Source: Scyliorhinus canicula
Taxonomy: Eukaryota
Length of the DNA: 64,000 nt
Reading direction: 5' to 3'
Assembly: GCF_902713615.1 (NCBI RefSeq)
Contig: NC_052150.1
Location: forward strand, 222,673,063 to 222,737,062
Part shown: positions 9,893 to 27,860 of the stretch, piece by piece
Layout: the number at the start of each line of letters is the position of its first letter
Position numbering within the stretch: position 1 is the first letter of the stretch
Program-made: the position numbers and the translations under genes
The notes under the pieces: model-generated
Seen by the model: only the letters and a program-made list of their open reading frames with translations
What the model was told of the DNA's origin: nothing
Database searches by the model: none

Positions 9893-10640
9893 AAGTCATA
9901 AGAACTAGGAGCAGGAGTAGGCCATCTGGCCCCTCGAGCCTGCTCCGCCATTCAATGAGATCATGGCTGATCTTTTGTGGACTCAGCTCCACTTTCCGGC
10001 CCGAACACCATAACCCTTAATCCCTTTATTCTTCAAAAAACTATCTATCTTTACCTTAAAAACATGTAATGAAGGAGCCTCAACTGCTTCACTGGGCAAG
10101 GAATTCCATAGATTCACAACCCTTTGGGTGAAGAAGTTCCTCCTAAACTCAGTTCTAAATCTACTTCCCCTTATTTTGAGGCTATGCCCCCTAGTTCTGC
10201 TGTCACCCGCCAGTGGAAACAACCTGCCCGCATCTATCCTATCTATTCCCTTCATAATTTTAAATGTTTCTATAAGATCCCCCCTCATCCTTCTAAATTC
10301 CAACGAGTACAGTCCCAGTCTACTCAACCTCTCCTCATAATCCAACCCCTTCAGCTCTGGGATTAACCTAGTGAATCTCCTCTGCACACCCTCCAGCGCC
10401 AGTACGTCCTTTCTCAAGTAAGGAGACCAAAACTGAACACAATACTCCAGGTGTGGCCGCACTAACACCTTATACAATTGCAACATAACCTCCCTAGTCT
10501 TAAACTCCATCCCTCTAGCAGTGAAGGACAAAATTCCATTTGCCTTCTTAATCACCTGTTGCACTTGTAAACCAACCTTCTGTGACTCATGCACTAGCAC
10601 ACCCAAGTCTCTCTGAACAGCGGCATGCTTTAATATTTTA
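9893..10640 (-). mobile_element. Young 5'-truncated CR1 (open 207-aa ORF2 C-terminus plus 3'UTR)
   Basis: LYKVLVRPHLEYCVQFWSP...FFTQRVVNLWNSLP with no stops. Confidence 0.92.
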
Positions 10641-13137: not shown

Positions 13138-13176
13138 TTAGATCTTGTTAAAGGCAGCAACATCTACGCTTTGCAC
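13138..13176 (-). CDS. EEF1D: EEF1D last coding exon VQSVDVAAFNKI*
   Basis: TTTTCAG|GTG...ATC TAA; canonical C-terminus. Confidence 0.97.
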   Translation of the reverse strand: MQSVDVAAFNKI

Positions 13177-16065: not shown

Positions 16066-16702
16066 TAATCTATAAAAACCATTTCCTCCATTTTTGTCAG
16101 CAACAAACAACACAAGAGAAAATGGTGGGTCGCGTGGGTCGGCCGGCTGGTAAAAATGAGCCCCCGGAAAAAAAGTTTGAAAAGCACTGGCATAAAGGAG
16201 CATGTCAGAGGACAAGACATAACCGGATACACCTCCCAACAGGATTGGCAGTGCAGCGTGATCGCAGGTATAACTCATGCTGATCAGCTCTGGCCCCGAG
16301 ACAACTCCTGGAGACATCCACACTTCCCCCAGAGGGATAGGGATCGGAGCTGGAACATTTGTGACATCACTGGCAACGCTGCATGAATTCCCCATCTCTG
16401 GTGTCCTCAGCATGGTGGTGTTGGTGAGCCGCTTTCTTGAACCACTGCAGCCCGTGTAACAAAGGCCCGCTCGCAGTGTTATAATGCAGAGAAATCAGGA
16501 ACTTAACCCAGGAATGATGACGGAATGGATGATTTATGGCGAGGTCGGGTTAATGTGCGAGGGAGGGGATGGTGTTACTACTCATTTCCTGATTTTGCAT
16601 TTCTAACCGGCCAAGGTGGTGTATTCCAAATAAACCCAGCCCCAGTAATGCTGAGCTCCACCATCCAACCCCTGATTGCCAGCTTTACTGTTCAATACTC
16701 AC

Positions 16703-16897
16703 GTAATCCTCAAACTTGGTGATTTCTTCCTCCAGCAGGTCTGTGCCAACCTTATCATCTTCCACCACACACTGGATCTGGAGTTTCCTGATCCCGTACC
16801 CGACCGGTACCAGCTTGGAGCCTCCCCACACCAAGCCGTCCAGCTGTACTGTGCGCACGCTCTCCTCCAGCTCCACCATGTCTGTCTCGTCGTCCCA
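16703..16897 (-). CDS. EEF1D: EEF1D GEF-domain exon [25 protein letters not shown]...KFEDY
   Basis: CCGCAG|TGG...TAC|GTGAGT; 195 nt; EF1 guanine-nucleotide exchange domain. Confidence 0.98.
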
Positions 16898-18187
16898 CTG
16901 CGGAGAACAGGCACTCATCTCAGCATAGTCGCAGTCAACCCCGCTTTCCACAGCCAGCTCGGACTGGCCAAAACCTATGCCCCGTCCACTCAATGAAACA
17001 CGGAAAATAGAAGCAGGAGGCCATTCTGCCCTTCGAGCCTGCTCCACCATTCAGTATGATCACCCAACTCAACTGAAGTGTCTACATCACAGTCACCTGT
17101 CAGAGCTCCTCAGTATAACTGGTCTGCTCCCCCCCCCCACCCACCTAGGGAGTTACCTGTCCGTTTTGTCAGTGCAAACTGCTTTGAATGAATCTCGATC
17201 TGCCGAGAAAAACTAAACCTCAACAGTCGGAAAAGATGCAATTTCCTGGTGGGGCTGCAAACGCGAAGTTACACTCGTTGGTGCCCCCAAATTTCCCGCC
17301 CATTCCATGAATGTACACCACAATTCAGAGTAAACTATCAGGGTACAGGGACAGTGCTGGGTTTGAACCACATAATCGCTCCTTTAATAAATTTCAAAGC
17401 ATCTACGCCCAGACGCAGCATCGTGGACCATGCAACCGGGGAAGCTTCAAAGCTTCAAAAATAGCGGCCTGGAAAAATGCCTTCAAAGCAACTGAGCAGG
17501 TCGCAGCAAGGATTAATAAAAACTAAAAAAAAAAATTTAAAAATCTTAGCACTAAAAATCAGGAAATGACTGTTTCTGGCTGCTGTTGGTTTAGTTACAC
17601 GGGGCTAAATCGCTGGCTGTTAAAGCAGACCAAGGCAGGCCAGCAGCACGGTTCGATTCCTGTAACAGCCTCCCCGAACAGGCGCTGGAATGTGGCGACT
17701 AGGGGCTTTTCACAGTAACTTCATTGAAGCCTACTCGCGACAATAAGCGATTTTCATTCATTAATTTCTGGAATTATATGTTTTAGCGAGCCAACTTGCT
17801 TAAAACACCATGTGTATAACTCTGTATTCAGGGAAGCCGGGGGGGGGGGGCTGGGGCAGAGATCCAATCAACGACAAAATTTGGGTGCGGCGTCATGGGT
17901 TTCTGCTCTCATTTACATTTGTAGTTGACTCATGTCCCGATTACACACATCTCTGGGCAACAAAAACATGGACGTGAAAGCCTTAAACGGTATGTTGCAA
18001 TGTACTGCTCAAGATGGAACAGAAACAAATACAGAATCATCTGAAGTGTTCTCCTCAGCCTTCTCCAGGATGTGCAAAGCATGTCACTGCCCAATACCCA
18101 CTGTTCTTATCATCATACATAACGCTAACCTGTCACACAAGCAATTACATTCATAGCGGGTGGGAGAGGAGAAATGTACAGGACCTT

Positions 18188-19069: not shown

Positions 19070-19676
19070 AGCCACCAGGAGGAGGCCATTTGGCCCTTCA
19101 AGCCCGCTCCGCCATTATCATGGCCGATCCAACTCAATAGCCTAGTCCCACTTTCCCCGAATATCGTTTGATCCTCTTCGCTCCAAGTGCGATATCTAAC
19201 TGCTTCTTGAAAAGATAAGTGTTTTGGCCTCAACTACTTCCTGTGGTAACAAATTCAACATGCTCTCTGGGCGGTGAAATCGCTCCCAATTTCTGTCCTA
19301 AATGGTCTACTTCGCATCTTTAGGCCGTGACTCCTGGTTCTGGGCACCCACATCACCAGGAACATCCTTCCTGTATCTACCCTGTCCAGTCCTGTCAGGA
19401 TTTTCTAGGTTTCTATGAGATTCCCCCCATATTCTTCTGAACTCTTGCGAATACAATCCTAACCAATTCTATCTTTCCTCTTATGTCAGTCCCGCCATCC
19501 CAGGAATCTTCACTGCACTCTCCCTGTAGCAAGAACATCCTTCCTCAGATAAGGAAACCAAAACTGCACATAATATTCCAGGTGTGGCCTCACCAAGGCC
19601 CTGTATAATTGCAGCAAGACACCACTGCTCCTGTACTCGAATCCTCTTGTAATGAAGGGCAGCATACCATTAGCCG

Positions 19677-19736
<60 letters not shown>

Positions 19737-21135
19737 CCATCATTTTGTAATTTTTATTCCTTGCTAATAGTACAGTAATCTGAAAACAATATACAGACGC
19801 AAAATCACAGATGCAGCCCAAACCTTCGCTGCCAGGCTTGGGGGAAGTGTGCCTTACACTGGAACACGAGGGCCTTACACTGGAACACAAACTTTAAAAA
19901 AAAAACAACGCAGGGCTCTGCCTGGGAAATGACGGGAGGCGAGGGTGGCTGCTGTCGCCTGGGCCACATGTGTAAAGAAGATCACATGCTATCACCGTGC
20001 CACTACAAGGCAAGGAGGAGTTACGCAATGAAATCCAGAGGTCTGTTAAATCCACCTTTTCTGTTCATGTATTGCCGATATTTCCTTTTCTGTTGCACAT
20101 TAACAGCGTAAGCATTGACAGAGCCGTCCAGTTTCTTGCCCTTCGTTGTGTCAAATGCATCAAATCCCATCACCTTCAACAGTTCGATTTCTTCCTCCGT
20201 CTTCCCCTCCATGTCGGCCTCTGAGATCTCGTGTTCTTTCTCCTGATCTTTCGGTCTCGAAGGCGATATTGAATTTGACTTGTTTCGGCGTGGGGACCTT
20301 GACCGTCTTCGGTGAGGAGACCTGGAGCGGCTCCTCCGGCGTTCCCGGTCTCGCTCACGTGACCTGGAGCGCTCGCGCCGCCTGGCTCTCTCCCGCTCCC
20401 TGGATGTCGACCTCGAGCGGCGACGCTCTCTGCGGGGTGAGCGGCTCCTGCTCCGACCCATCGTTCGGAGCCTGAAGCACCAACACCTCCGGAAGCTTCC
20501 AGAAACTCCCACAATCCAATCCGCGGCTGCAGCTCGGCGGCTCCCCCTGGCGGCCGGAGGCAACACTGCCGCCCCGTCCCCTGCCGGCCGGAGGCCTGAC
20601 TGCAGCCCCGCCCCCTGCCGGCCGGAGGCAACACTGCAGCCCCGCCCCCCGCCGGCCGGAGGCCAGACCGCTGGACAGGCCCCGCCCCCTGGAACCGGCC
20701 GACACCCGGGAGAGGTCCGGGCCCCGCGCCCTGCCACCATTAGCCGTCTTTAACGCCTGCTGTACCTGCATGCTTACTTTCAGAGACGGATGCACGCGGA
20801 CACAAAGATCTCGCTGAGCATCCATATCTTTCAATTTACATCCATTCAAATAATAATCGGCCTTCCTATTTTTGCAACCAAAGTGGATAACCTTGCATTT
20901 CTCCAAATTATACTGCATCTGCCATTCATTTGCCCACTCGCTCAACTTGTCCAAATCACACTGAAGGATCTTTGCATCCTCCTCACAGCTCACCCTCCCA
21001 CCCAACTTGGGGTCATCGGCAAATTTGGAGATATTACATTTTGTTTCCTCTTCTAAATCATTAATCTATATTGTGAATAGCTGGGAACCCAGCTCCGCAG
21101 TGGTACCCCACTAGTCACTGCCTGCCAATTTGAAA
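19070..21135 (-). mobile_element. CR1 LINE 3' fragment interrupted by the SNRNP27 retrocopy
   Basis: RT C-terminal peptides LQCDLDKLSEWANEWQMQYN and LYRALVRPHLEYYVQFW are colinear across the insertion. Confidence 0.9.
19682..20735 (-). pseudogene. SNRNP27: Processed retrocopy of SNRNP27 (U4/U6.U5 27K) with intact 146-aa ORF at 20021-20461
   Basis: Intronless [18 protein letters not shown]...[21 protein letters not shown]; AATAAA at 19753-19758; poly(A) 19679-19736; 16-bp TSD at 19666-19681 and 20736-20751. Confidence 0.95.
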
Positions 21136-21347
21136 AAAACTCTTTAATTCCTACTCTTTATAGGTCCTGTTTCTTTAGACACATGCTGAGTGTTTTCAGC
21201 ATTTACTGTGTTTTTCCCAGTTTCCAGCATCCACAGTATTAGCTATTACTTGCTGGTGGCGGGCATTACACAGACTTGAGAACGTACCTTGAGAAAAACC
21301 TTGGAAAAATCAGATTGAACAGAATTCCTGTCACCAAATACCCGACT

Positions 21348-21660
21348 CCAATCACTGCCCAGTGAACAATCCCCCTCCATCCCAATCACTGCCCAGTGAA
21401 CAATCCCCCTCCATCCCAATCACTGCCCAGTGACCAATCCCCCTCCATCCCAATCACTGCCCAGTGACCAATCCCCCTCCATCCCAATCACTGTCCAGTG
21501 AACAATCCCCCTCCATCCCAATCACTGCCCAGTGAACAATCCCCCTCCATCCCAATCACTGCCCAGTGACCAATCCCCCTCCATCCCAATCACTGCCCAG
21601 TGAACAATCCCCCTCCATCCCAATCACTGCCCAGTGAATAAACCGCTTCACTCCAATCAC
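21348..21660. repeat. 34-bp minisatellite, ~9 copies
   Basis: Unit CCAATCACTGCCCAGTGAACAATCCCCCTCCATC. Confidence 0.95.
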
Positions 21661-21711
21661 CGTGGGTAGTGGTGGAGTTTGGTGTGGTTGGGTAAAGGGG
21701 GAATGGCTTAC

Positions 21712-21900
21712 TGGTTTCACGTCCAGAAGAATAGAGGACTTGGCGATGAGGGCTGGTTTCTTGGATTTCTTTGCTGCGTATTCACGTAACCGTTCCTCGC
21801 GAATCCTCTCCTTCTCTGCACTCTCTTCTTCATCACTGCTTCCAAATAGATCAATGTCATCGTCTTCATCCTCCGCTGCCTCAGGCTGCTTTGTGCTGGG
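21712..21900 (-). CDS. EEF1D: EEF1D exon with acidic/CK2 region PSTKQ...[14 protein letters not shown]...[10 protein letters not shown]
   Basis: ACAAAG|CCC...CCA|GTAAGC; 189 nt; EF-1beta acidic motif. Confidence 0.97.
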
Positions 21901-25179: not shown

Positions 25180-27860
25180 CTCCTCATCATCCTGTTCCCC
25201 TTTACCAGTCACCTCATCACCCAGTTCCCCTTTACCAGTCTCCTCATCACCCTGTTCCCCTTTACCAGTCTCCACATCACCCTGTTCCCCTTTACCAGTC
25301 TCCACATCACCCTGTTCCCCTTTACCAGTCTCCACATCACCCTGTTCCCCTTTACCAGTCACCTCATCATCCTGTTCCCCTTTACCAGTCTCCTCATCAC
25401 CCTGTTCCCCTTTACCAGTCTCCACATCACCCTGTTCCCCTTTACCAGTCTCATCACCCTGTTCCCCTTTACCAGTCACCTCATCACCCTGTTCCCCTTT
25501 ACCAGTCACCTCATCACCCTGTTCCCCTTTACCAGTCACCTCATCACCCAGTTCCCCTTTACCAGTCTCCACATCACCCAGTTCCCCTTTACCAGTCACC
25601 TCATCACCCGGTTCCCCTTTACCAGTCTCCACATCGCCCTGTTCCCCTTTACCAGTCACCTCATCACCCGGTTCCCCTTTACCAGTCTCCACATCACCCT
25701 GTTCCCCTTTACCAGTCACCTCATCACCCTGTTCCCCTTTACCAGTCACCTCATCACCCGGTTCCCCTTTACCAGTCTCCACATCACCCTGTTCCCCTTT
25801 ACCAGTCACCTCATCACCCTGTTCCCCTTTACCAGTCACCTCATCATCCGGTTCCCCTTTACCAGTCTCCACATCACCCGGTTCCCCTTTACCAGTCTCC
25901 ACATCACCCTGTTCCCCTTTACCAGTCTCCACATCACCCTGTTCCCCTTTACCAGTCTCCACATCACCCTGTTCCCCTTTACCAGTCACCTCATCACCCA
26001 GTCACCTCATCACCCAGTTCCCCTTTACCAGTCACCTCATCACCCTGTTCCCCTTTACCAGTCACCTCATCACCCTGTTCCCCTTTACCAGTCTCCACAT
26101 CACCCGGTTCCCCTTTACCAGTCTCCACATCACCCTGTTCCCCTTTACCAGTCTCCACATCACCCAGTTCCCCTTTACCAGTCTCCACATCACCCTGTTC
26201 CCCTTTACCAGTCGCCTCATCACCCAGTTCCCCTTTACCAGTCACATCATCACCCAGTTCCCCTTTACCAGTCACCTCATCACCCAGTTCCCCTTTACCA
26301 ATCACCTCATCACCCAGTTCCCCTTTACTAGTCTCTCATCACCCTGTTTCCCTTTACCAGTCTCCACATCACCCGGTCCCCCTTTACCAGTCTCCACATC
26401 ACCCTGTTCCCCTTTACCAGTCTCCACTTCACCCTGTTCCCCTTTACCAGTCTCCACATCACCCTGTTCCCCTTTACCAGTCTCCACATCACCCTGTTCC
26501 CCATTACCAGTCTCCACATAACCCTGTTCCCCTTTACCAGTCTCCACATCACCCTGTTCCCCTTTACCAGTCTCCACATCACCCTGTTCCCCTTTACCAG
26601 TCTCCACATCACCCAGTTCCCCTTTACCAGTCTCCACATCACCCTGTTCCCCTTTACCAGTCACCTCATCACCCAGTTCCCCTTTACCAGTCACCTCATC
26701 ACCCAGTTCCCCTTTACCAGTCACCTCATCACCCTGTTCCCCTTTACCAGTCACCTCATCACCCTGTTCCCCTTTACCAGTCTCCACATCACCCGGTTCC
26801 CCTTTACCAGTCTCCACATCACCCTGTTCCCCTTTACCAGTCTCCATTTCGCCCTGTTCCCCTTTACCAGTCTCCACATCGCCCTGTTCCCCTTTACCAG
26901 TCTCCACATCACCCTGTTCCCCTTTACCAGTCTCCACATCGCCCTGTTCCCCTTTACCAGTCTCCACATCGCCCTGTTCCCCTTTACCAGTCTCCACATC
27001 ACCCTGTTCCCCTTTACCAGTCTCCACATCACCCAGTTCCCCTTTACTAGTCTCCACATCACCCGGTCCCCCTTTACCAGTCTCCACATCACCCTGTTCC
27101 CCTTTACCAGTCTCCACATCACCCTGTTCCCCTTTACCAGTCTCCACATCACCCTGTTCCCCTTTACCAGTCTCCACATCACCCGGTTCCCCTTTACCAG
27201 TCTCCACATCACCCTGTTCCCCTTTACCAGTCTCCACATCACCCTGTTCCCCTTTACCAGTCTCCACTTCACCCTGTTCCCCTTTACCAGTCTCCACTTC
27301 ACCCTGTTCCCCTTTACCAGTCACCTCATCACCCAGTTCCCCTTTACCAGTCTCCACATCACCCTGTTCCCCTTTACCAGTCTCCACATCACCCGGTTCC
27401 CCTTTACCAGTCTCCACATCACCCAGTCACCTCATCACCCAGTTCCCCTTTACCAGTCACCTCATCACCCTGTTCCCCTTTACCAGTCTCCACATCACCC
27501 TGTTCCCCTTTACCAGTCTCCACATCACCCGGTTCCCCTTTACCAGTCTCCACATCACCCTGTTCCCCTTTACCAGTCTCCACTTCACCCTGTTCCCCTT
27601 TACCAGTCACCTCATCACCCGGTTCCCCTTTACCAGTTTCAACATCACCCTGTTCCCCTTTACGAGTCTCCACATCACCCGGTTCCCCTTTACCAGTCTC
27701 CACATCACCCTGTTCCCCTTTACCAGTTTCAACATCACCCTGTTCCCCTTTACCAGTTTCAACATCACCCTGTTCCCATTTACCAGTCTCCACATCACCC
27801 TGTTCCCATTTACCAGTCTCCACATCACCCTGTTCCCATTTACCAGTCCTCCACATCACC
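25180..27860. repeat. 30-bp minisatellite, roughly 90 copies (2.7 kb)
   Basis: Unit CATCACCCTGTTCCCCTTTACCAGTCTCCA with variant units. Confidence 0.98.

Follow-up and report, generated by a model that had tools for sequence, protein, structure and literature searches.

Here, we describe a processed retrocopy of SNRNP27 that lies in an intron of EEF1D in Scyliorhinus canicula, the small-spotted catshark. It is located in a stretch of 64,000 nucleotides (nt) of this genome (contig NC_052150.1, positions 222,673,063 to 222,737,062 of the forward strand), referred to here as the window, whose own numbering is used throughout. The copy occupies positions 19666-20751 on the minus strand, is full length and free of introns, and has the same orientation as its host gene. 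We favor, with a probability of roughly 0.85, the reading that it arose recently through an L1-type process. In such an event, an SNRNP27 mRNA of the catshark lineage, already mature and polyadenylated, would have been reverse transcribed at a CTTT/AA nick in an old fragment of a long interspersed nuclear element (LINE), through L1-type target-primed reverse transcription in trans.

The insert is bounded by an exact direct repeat of 16 base pairs (bp), which reads ACCATTAGCCGTCTTT on the plus strand and AAAGACGGCTAATGGT on the minus strand. The two repeats are 100% identical, lie 1070 bp apart, and allow no extension in either direction; the chance of a given 16-mer recurring at a given place is about 2e-10. 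Next to the downstream repeat, the plus strand carries a run of 58 T residues without interruption (19679-19736), whose first three residues double as the end of the duplication, and the tail measures 55 nt if these three are excluded. Such an overlap would be expected if the T residues of the nicked target primed reverse transcription. An AATAAA signal is located 16 nt ahead of the A-run (19758-19753, minus strand), the reading frame is intact and encodes the full SNRNP27 domain in 146 codons (PF08648; E = 2.9e-26), and the complete 5' leader of the copy, which is very GC-rich, comprises 274 nt (20735-20462). The observed/expected CpG ratio is 0.84 to 0.89 in the insert, compared with 0.39 to 0.48 for the flanking DNA and 0.46 for the window as a whole. 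An earlier note on this DNA had proposed an intact SNRNP27 retrocopy with an open 146-amino-acid frame, an uninterrupted 58-nt poly(A), a perfect 16-bp target-site duplication, and retained CpGs, and each of these features was recovered here, the length of the A-run and both junctions being known from the assembly alone. No second SNRNP27 copy was found within the window, in which only an internal 34-bp repeat of the insert gave self-matches. The 3' untranslated region (UTR) of the copy contains a perfect 17-nt direct repeat with a 21-nt spacing (19851-19888), which the mRNA contigs share.

Four sequencing runs were aligned on positions 19200-21900: three of RNA (X3 and X8, which come from two studies, and X33, a poly(A)-primed, 3'-biased single-cell library) and one of DNA (X2, the single DNA sample, which probably comes from the assembled animal). 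Twenty runs from eight studies contain 42 to 53% of the words sampled from a stretch that is 58% insert. Compared with X8 RNA, the copy shows no substitution over 815 nt (contigs 19747-20076 and 20075-20561), the first of these contigs having one additional A in a run of 10 A residues; compared with X3 RNA, it shows at most one substitution over 848 nt (none in contigs 19940-20104 and 20076-20628 and one in contig 19747-19905). Across 19747-20628, copy and RNA contigs are collinear, and the contigs end at 19737, exactly where the A-run of the copy begins (record 10 of X3 and record 18 of X8, 10 nt past 19747). An X3 contig and 12 X33 reads exit the copy at 20076/20075, the sole parental intron position observed directly, into sequences with a GT start and a polypyrimidine-AG end that are absent from the window. 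Because these pre-mRNA reads show a GT..AG intron at this position, an expressed, intron-bearing SNRNP27 parent exists elsewhere in the genome, and the window copy is processed. The X2 DNA contigs pass the same position without an intron and have 0 differences over 19747-20541; the breaks between X2 unitigs (30-nt overlaps at 19937-19966, 20053-20082, and 20140-20169) differ from the known exon junction. X33 is variable at three sites (C to T at 19916 in 41% of reads, G to A at 20123 in 31%, and a 1-nt deletion in the A-run at 19896 in 64%), where the copy has the haplotype of X3 and X8. Separating copy from parent by means of these variants was considered and rejected, since their fractions do not fit a two-source model and X3 and X8 have the window letters; we read them as ordinary parental polymorphism.

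The insertion is a clean one into an older LINE fragment, as indicated by a restored reading frame, a continuous relative, and DNA contigs of family members that run across the site. Removal of the insert and one repeat in silico yields a single minus-strand frame that is unbroken across the site and that forms part of the C-terminal region of a LINE reverse transcriptase (weak RVT_1 match). A relative of this fragment at 10122-10619, which is 66% identical, is uninterrupted at the corresponding site. X2 DNA contigs link 19647 to 20748-20758 with 24 to 40 unlike letters in between; we considered these joints (19647 to 20748/20758) as an empty-site allele and rejected this view, as the unlike letters assign them to other copies of the LINE family. 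The sense strand at the target reads GCGTT/AAAGACGG, and the nicked strand reads 5'-GTCTTT/AACG-3'. The nick, CTTT/AA, is a variant of the L1 endonuclease site and is on the strand that bears the T-run, in agreement with the earlier proposal that the target, written as TT/AAAG, fits the L1 consensus.

Several points weigh against parts of this reading. The SNRNP27 RNA reads are identical to copy and parent alike, and their source locus is not separable; the others are weighed below beside the alternatives that they favor.

One concerns the 5' end of the copy. In X33, 22 reads with loose ends at 20517 and 13 at 20490 continue as the reverse complement of the template-switch oligonucleotide, and because this oligonucleotide marks cDNA 5' ends, we take these positions to be the main cDNA 5' ends. 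Further upstream, X33 has no depth above 20565, X8 has a contig reaching 20561, and X3 extends to 20628 at high depth and to 20662 at a depth of 4; no RNA contig of X3, X8, or X33 was found above 20662, whereas the copy extends to 20735. The 218 nt above 20517 are 81% GC and include a 34-bp tandem array (20543-20663), and a GCCCCGCCCCCTG-type motif occurs five times, as far as 20733. The five units of the ~34-bp repeat are GC-box-like, and four GGGCGG boxes (at 20687, 20647, 20613, and 20574) lie 57 to 170 nt upstream of 20517. Beside the mapped 5' ends, there are an ETS-type CTTCCGG motif (20495) and a CCAAT box in inverted orientation (20520). It is conceivable, and in our view somewhat the better explanation, that the parent's main TATA-less promoter entered the copy as part of a rare transcript initiated upstream. 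The template would then probably have begun at this rare start, and the copy would hold the main start-site cluster together with a GC-box promoter of ~220 bp, which could drive its independent transcription. Among expressed mammalian retrocopies, about 3% acquired the parental promoter by way of an upstream-start transcript (PMC4772013). The window copy resembles this class (Carelli et al. 2016, Fig. 2A) in extending ~220 to 245 nt above the main 5' ends and in the ETS motif, CCAAT box, and GC boxes located there, which would be expected had an upstream-initiated transcript brought along the main promoter downstream of its start; it differs in that its 5' ends derive from the template-switch reads of a single-cell library rather than from cap analysis of gene expression and in that its promoter is a predicted one. 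Alternatively, reverse transcriptase may stall on meeting the 81%-GC leader, and the 274 nt would be an ordinary 5' UTR that brought no promoter along. The template-switch ends, which adjoin the GC-rich leader, would then not be cap sites.

The effect on the host gene was the second subject of concern. EEF1D is encoded on the minus strand, as both exons flanking the insertion show, and the sense orientation within EEF1D that the earlier note had reported is thus correct. The host intron (21711-16898; GT..AG; 4814 nt) splits the exchange-factor domain. The PF00736 match of the exon starting at 16897 covers profile positions 9 to 77 of 88, and the last EEF1D exon ends with ..DVAAFNKI at 13141. 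With its sense orientation and canonical polyadenylation signal, 960 nt downstream of the EEF1D donor site, the insertion could be disruptive, either by terminating some EEF1D transcripts in the intron through its AATAAA and A-tract or by receiving spliced EEF1D exons. Sense intronic insertions of the L1 type are known as a cause of premature polyadenylation. Furthermore, ~11% of expressed mammalian retrocopies use neighboring or host-gene promoters (PMC4772013), which also counts in favor of such an effect. The reads point the other way: 595 X33 reads and the X3 and X8 contigs that leave the exon at 21712/21713, which are the best-supported loose ends, all continue with the letters of 16869-16898, that is, with the normal next exon. 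RNA depth is zero in the unique intron bins at 21202-21656 and in the 5' junction bins at 20565-20746 in all three RNA runs, and the copy is without the downstream cleavage element of the parent, because this element is not part of the mRNA. No intron-terminated or chimeric EEF1D transcripts were seen in the three RNA runs, a weak negative in that their donor animals may not carry the insertion. Disruption of EEF1D is unlikely in our view, and the truncation or host-driven expression suggested earlier found no support among these donors. The last base of the upstream EEF1D exon (21712) is an A in the window (CCA/GT) and a G (CCG) in the X3 and X8 contigs and in ~76% of the X33 reads, a synonymous variant at position -1 of the splice donor.

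The relatives of the copy place the event within the catshark lineage. Its protein is 98 to 99% identical to SNRNP27 of Mustelus asterias (147 amino acids), the gene for which spans ~55 kb. Compared with all other shark orthologues, the copy has the changes H60N and Q70P and has lost one Ser; N60, P70, and the Ser loss occur as a set in no other shark orthologue, and a skate protein (P0002) has P70 independently. Because the copy carries these catshark-lineage residues, its sequence excludes that it is shared with distant sharks. The only catshark SNRNP27 entry in the protein collection is XP_038654332.1 (P0003), annotated as "SNRNP27-like." It is a single-exon gene of 441 bp antisense within another gene, and on account of this structure, we interpret it as another SNRNP27 retrocopy, older than the one in the window. 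P0003 shares the Ser loss, but positions 60 and 70 are still the ancestral H60 and Q70; among its ten private changes, several (R to W, H, or Q) correspond to CpG transitions. Its frame is open, with 9 of the 10 private changes in the N-terminal Arg/Ser-rich part and 1 in the C-terminal SNRNP27 domain, and it could be a retained retrogene or merely be decaying slowly. The two copies thus come from the same parent gene in the same species and both show the Ser loss; P0003 differs in that it is older and annotated and runs antisense to its host; the window copy is in sense orientation and has no entry in the protein collection. The order suggested by these residues would be a Ser loss in the catshark lineage, the P0003 retrocopy, two parental substitutions, and finally the window copy. 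The 146-amino-acid protein of the window copy was absent from a collection of 15 billion proteins, and no intron-bearing catshark SNRNP27 was found among the matches. In the catshark gene set, or in the assembly, the true parent is apparently either unannotated or lacking, although its existence is shown by the pre-mRNA reads.

How recent the event was is less readily stated in years. The nil divergence from the parental mRNA and the absence from distant sharks bear out the earlier description of the copy as very young, and 0 substitutions over 815 nt set a 95% upper bound of ~3 differences (0.37%). The only directly measured shark mutation rate, that of the epaulette shark, is 7e-10 per bp per generation (PMC10587355), at which this bound, with both lineages counted, corresponds to up to ~2.6 million generations. 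With a shark mutation rate so low, sequence identity is a weak clock, and the bound is loose. The copy might accordingly be older, perhaps by millions of years, and fixed, its identity being kept by slow mutation or by gene conversion or purifying selection; the open frame that P0003 also retains fits this view. We consider it improbable. Long pure A-tracts are very unstable and shorten or gain interruptions fast, as is known from young primate Alu and L1 tails, and the copy still has a pure A-tract of 55 to 58 nt. Its UTRs are as unchanged as its coding part, its CpG ratio is 0.84 in a genome at 0.46, it postdates the two parental substitutions missing from P0003, and neither the tail nor the duplication would survive conversion between unlinked loci. 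Better signs of youth than identity are the pure A-tract, 71 untouched CpGs, and the match to a haplotype that is still segregating. Taken together, the insertion is likely recent and possibly still polymorphic.

The insertion marks that the earlier note ascribed to L1-type machinery, namely, a poly(A) placed on the T-run of the nick, a 16-bp duplication, and a CTTT/AA site, are all present. As the combination of poly(A)-primed insertion, duplication, and nick site is the L1 signature, it suggests that such machinery was recently active in the catshark, and L1 is the presumed source of the enzyme. Mobilization in trans that depends on poly(A) is a property of L1, while LINEs of the CR1 and L2 types recognize their own 3' ends (PMC3747384). 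On the other hand, CR1-group LINEs dominate shark genomes, and a 2016 survey found L1 in Chondrichthyes only as fragments (PMC5203782), both of which would favor a reverse transcriptase from another element, such as a CR1/L2-type LINE, Penelope, or an endogenous retrovirus. We regard such a source as quite improbable: the tail directly on the T-run of the nick occurs together with the duplication and CTTT/AA, the own-3'-end recognition of CR1/L2 LINEs does not match it, and retroviral copies are without a poly(A)-primed target site. The catshark genome paper gives a LINE content of 34% and nothing on retrocopies or L1 (PMC11979771). Elsewhere in the window, a minus-strand frame of 253 amino acids at 974-1735 matches Exo_endo_phos (1.4e-10), and "Transposon TX1 149 kDa protein" is among its nearest atlas clusters; it may be an endonuclease fragment of an L1/Tx1-group LINE and is a lead only. 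For the reverse transcriptase open reading frame (ORF) at 57712-59118, the protein atlas gave only generic RVT_1 clusters.

An assembly artifact, in which a cDNA-like or chimeric read was placed in the intron, is hardly credible: in its favor, both junctions are bridged by no reads or contigs in any of the four runs, with zero X2 depth at 20565-20746 and with 19669-19746 outside the read alignment, but an artifact would not make a perfect 16-bp duplication at CTTT/AA or split a LINE frame cleanly, and intron-free X2 DNA contigs match the copy with 0 differences.

Processed retrocopies are routine in mammals, and the event described here is clean but ordinary in kind. Like mammalian retrocopies made by L1, including the polymorphic "gene retrocopy insertion" variants of human and mouse, the window copy derives from a short, highly expressed housekeeping mRNA, is intron-free, and shows a tail after AATAAA, a 16-bp duplication, a TTTT/AA-type nick, and a location in an intron of another gene; unlike them, it is found in a cartilaginous fish with predominantly CR1-group LINEs, where the enzyme source is deduced from the insertion marks. 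The Greenland shark retrogenes RAD51, OPTN, PLEKHA1, LRAT, and WAPAL (bioRxiv 10.1101/2024.09.09.611499) are likewise single-exon copies of multiexon genes and are flanked by LINEs or long terminal repeat elements. They come from gene models without insertion hallmarks, in contrast to the window copy with its intact tail, duplication, and nick site and its undiverged sequence.

For a shark, an undiverged, long-tailed retrocopy suggests poly(A)-recognizing, L1-type activity in the recent past and perhaps at present, where L1 was thought to exist only as fragments, and it offers a handle on the active element. It may be a rare case of a retrocopy caught just after its birth, with the promoter of its parent included. 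If it is polymorphic, it provides a ready marker and a natural experiment on a sense intronic insertion in a housekeeping gene. A further-reaching view, that the copy is a segregating, promoter-carrying, independently transcribed duplicate of an essential gene of the tri-small nuclear ribonucleoprotein, made by a presently active catshark L1 lineage, is doubtful as a whole. Should it be true, a segregating copy and an active L1 would be a direct sign, the first in cartilaginous fish, that mRNA mobilization in trans by L1 is ongoing, and the segregating insertion would be a natural allele with which to test a sense cassette of CpG island and poly(A) inside EEF1D. For annotation, some caution is warranted, as SNRNP27 RNA sequencing reads map perfectly to an EEF1D intron and the parent is seemingly missing from the catshark protein set.

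Table 1. Features of the SNRNP27 retrocopy, its insertion site, and the flanking EEF1D exons, in the order of the minus strand
Feature	Positions	Strand	Basis or remarks
EEF1D exon, acidic region, ends ..SSILLDVKP	21712..21858	(-)	PF10587 EF-1_beta_acid, 2.8e-13; donor GT at 21711-21710
LINE reverse transcriptase fragment, upstream half	20752..21240	(-)	Weak RVT_1 match; frame restored on removal of the insert
Target-site duplication, upstream copy	20736..20751	(-)	Exact 16-nt direct repeat; spacing of 1070; not extendable
5' leader above main mapped cDNA 5' ends	20518..20735	(-)	81% GC; ~34-bp repeat; GC boxes
Main 5' UTR	20462..20517	(-)	Template-switch oligonucleotide read ends at 20517 and 20490; motifs
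SNRNP27 ORF, 146 amino acids plus stop	20021..20461	(-)	Pfam PF08648, 2.9e-26; identical to RNA contigs
3' UTR, 284 nt	19737..20020	(-)	AATAAA at 19758-19753; RNA contigs stop at 19737
Poly(A) tail, 55 nt, or 58 nt if the AAA at the start of the downstream repeat is counted	19682..19736	(-)	T-run, 100% matches
Target-site duplication, downstream copy	19666..19681	(-)	Same exact 16-nt repeat
LINE reverse transcriptase fragment, downstream half	19200..19665	(-)	Same restored frame; bridging contigs of family members
Next EEF1D exon, WDDETD.., exchange-factor domain	16700..16897	(-)	PF00736 EF1_GNE, 3.2e-26; acceptor AG at 16899-16898

The window contains further repeats. A 34-bp tandem repeat of 4.5 units with 98% matches (21348-21500) precedes the insertion by 600 bp within the host intron and is unrelated in sequence to the 34-bp repeat of the copy itself. 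A minisatellite with a 30-bp unit, ~89 units, and 90 to 94% matches is present in an EEF1D intron at 25180-27860; translated, it yields long ORFs on either strand, and its Pentapeptide_2 match (4.2e-30) is spurious. Finally, a minus-strand ORF of 293 amino acids at 49513-50394 scores 43.9 bits for the PCF11 RFEGP repeat, against a Pfam cutoff of 43 bits, and is probably repeat derived, since overlapping ORFs are found on both strands.

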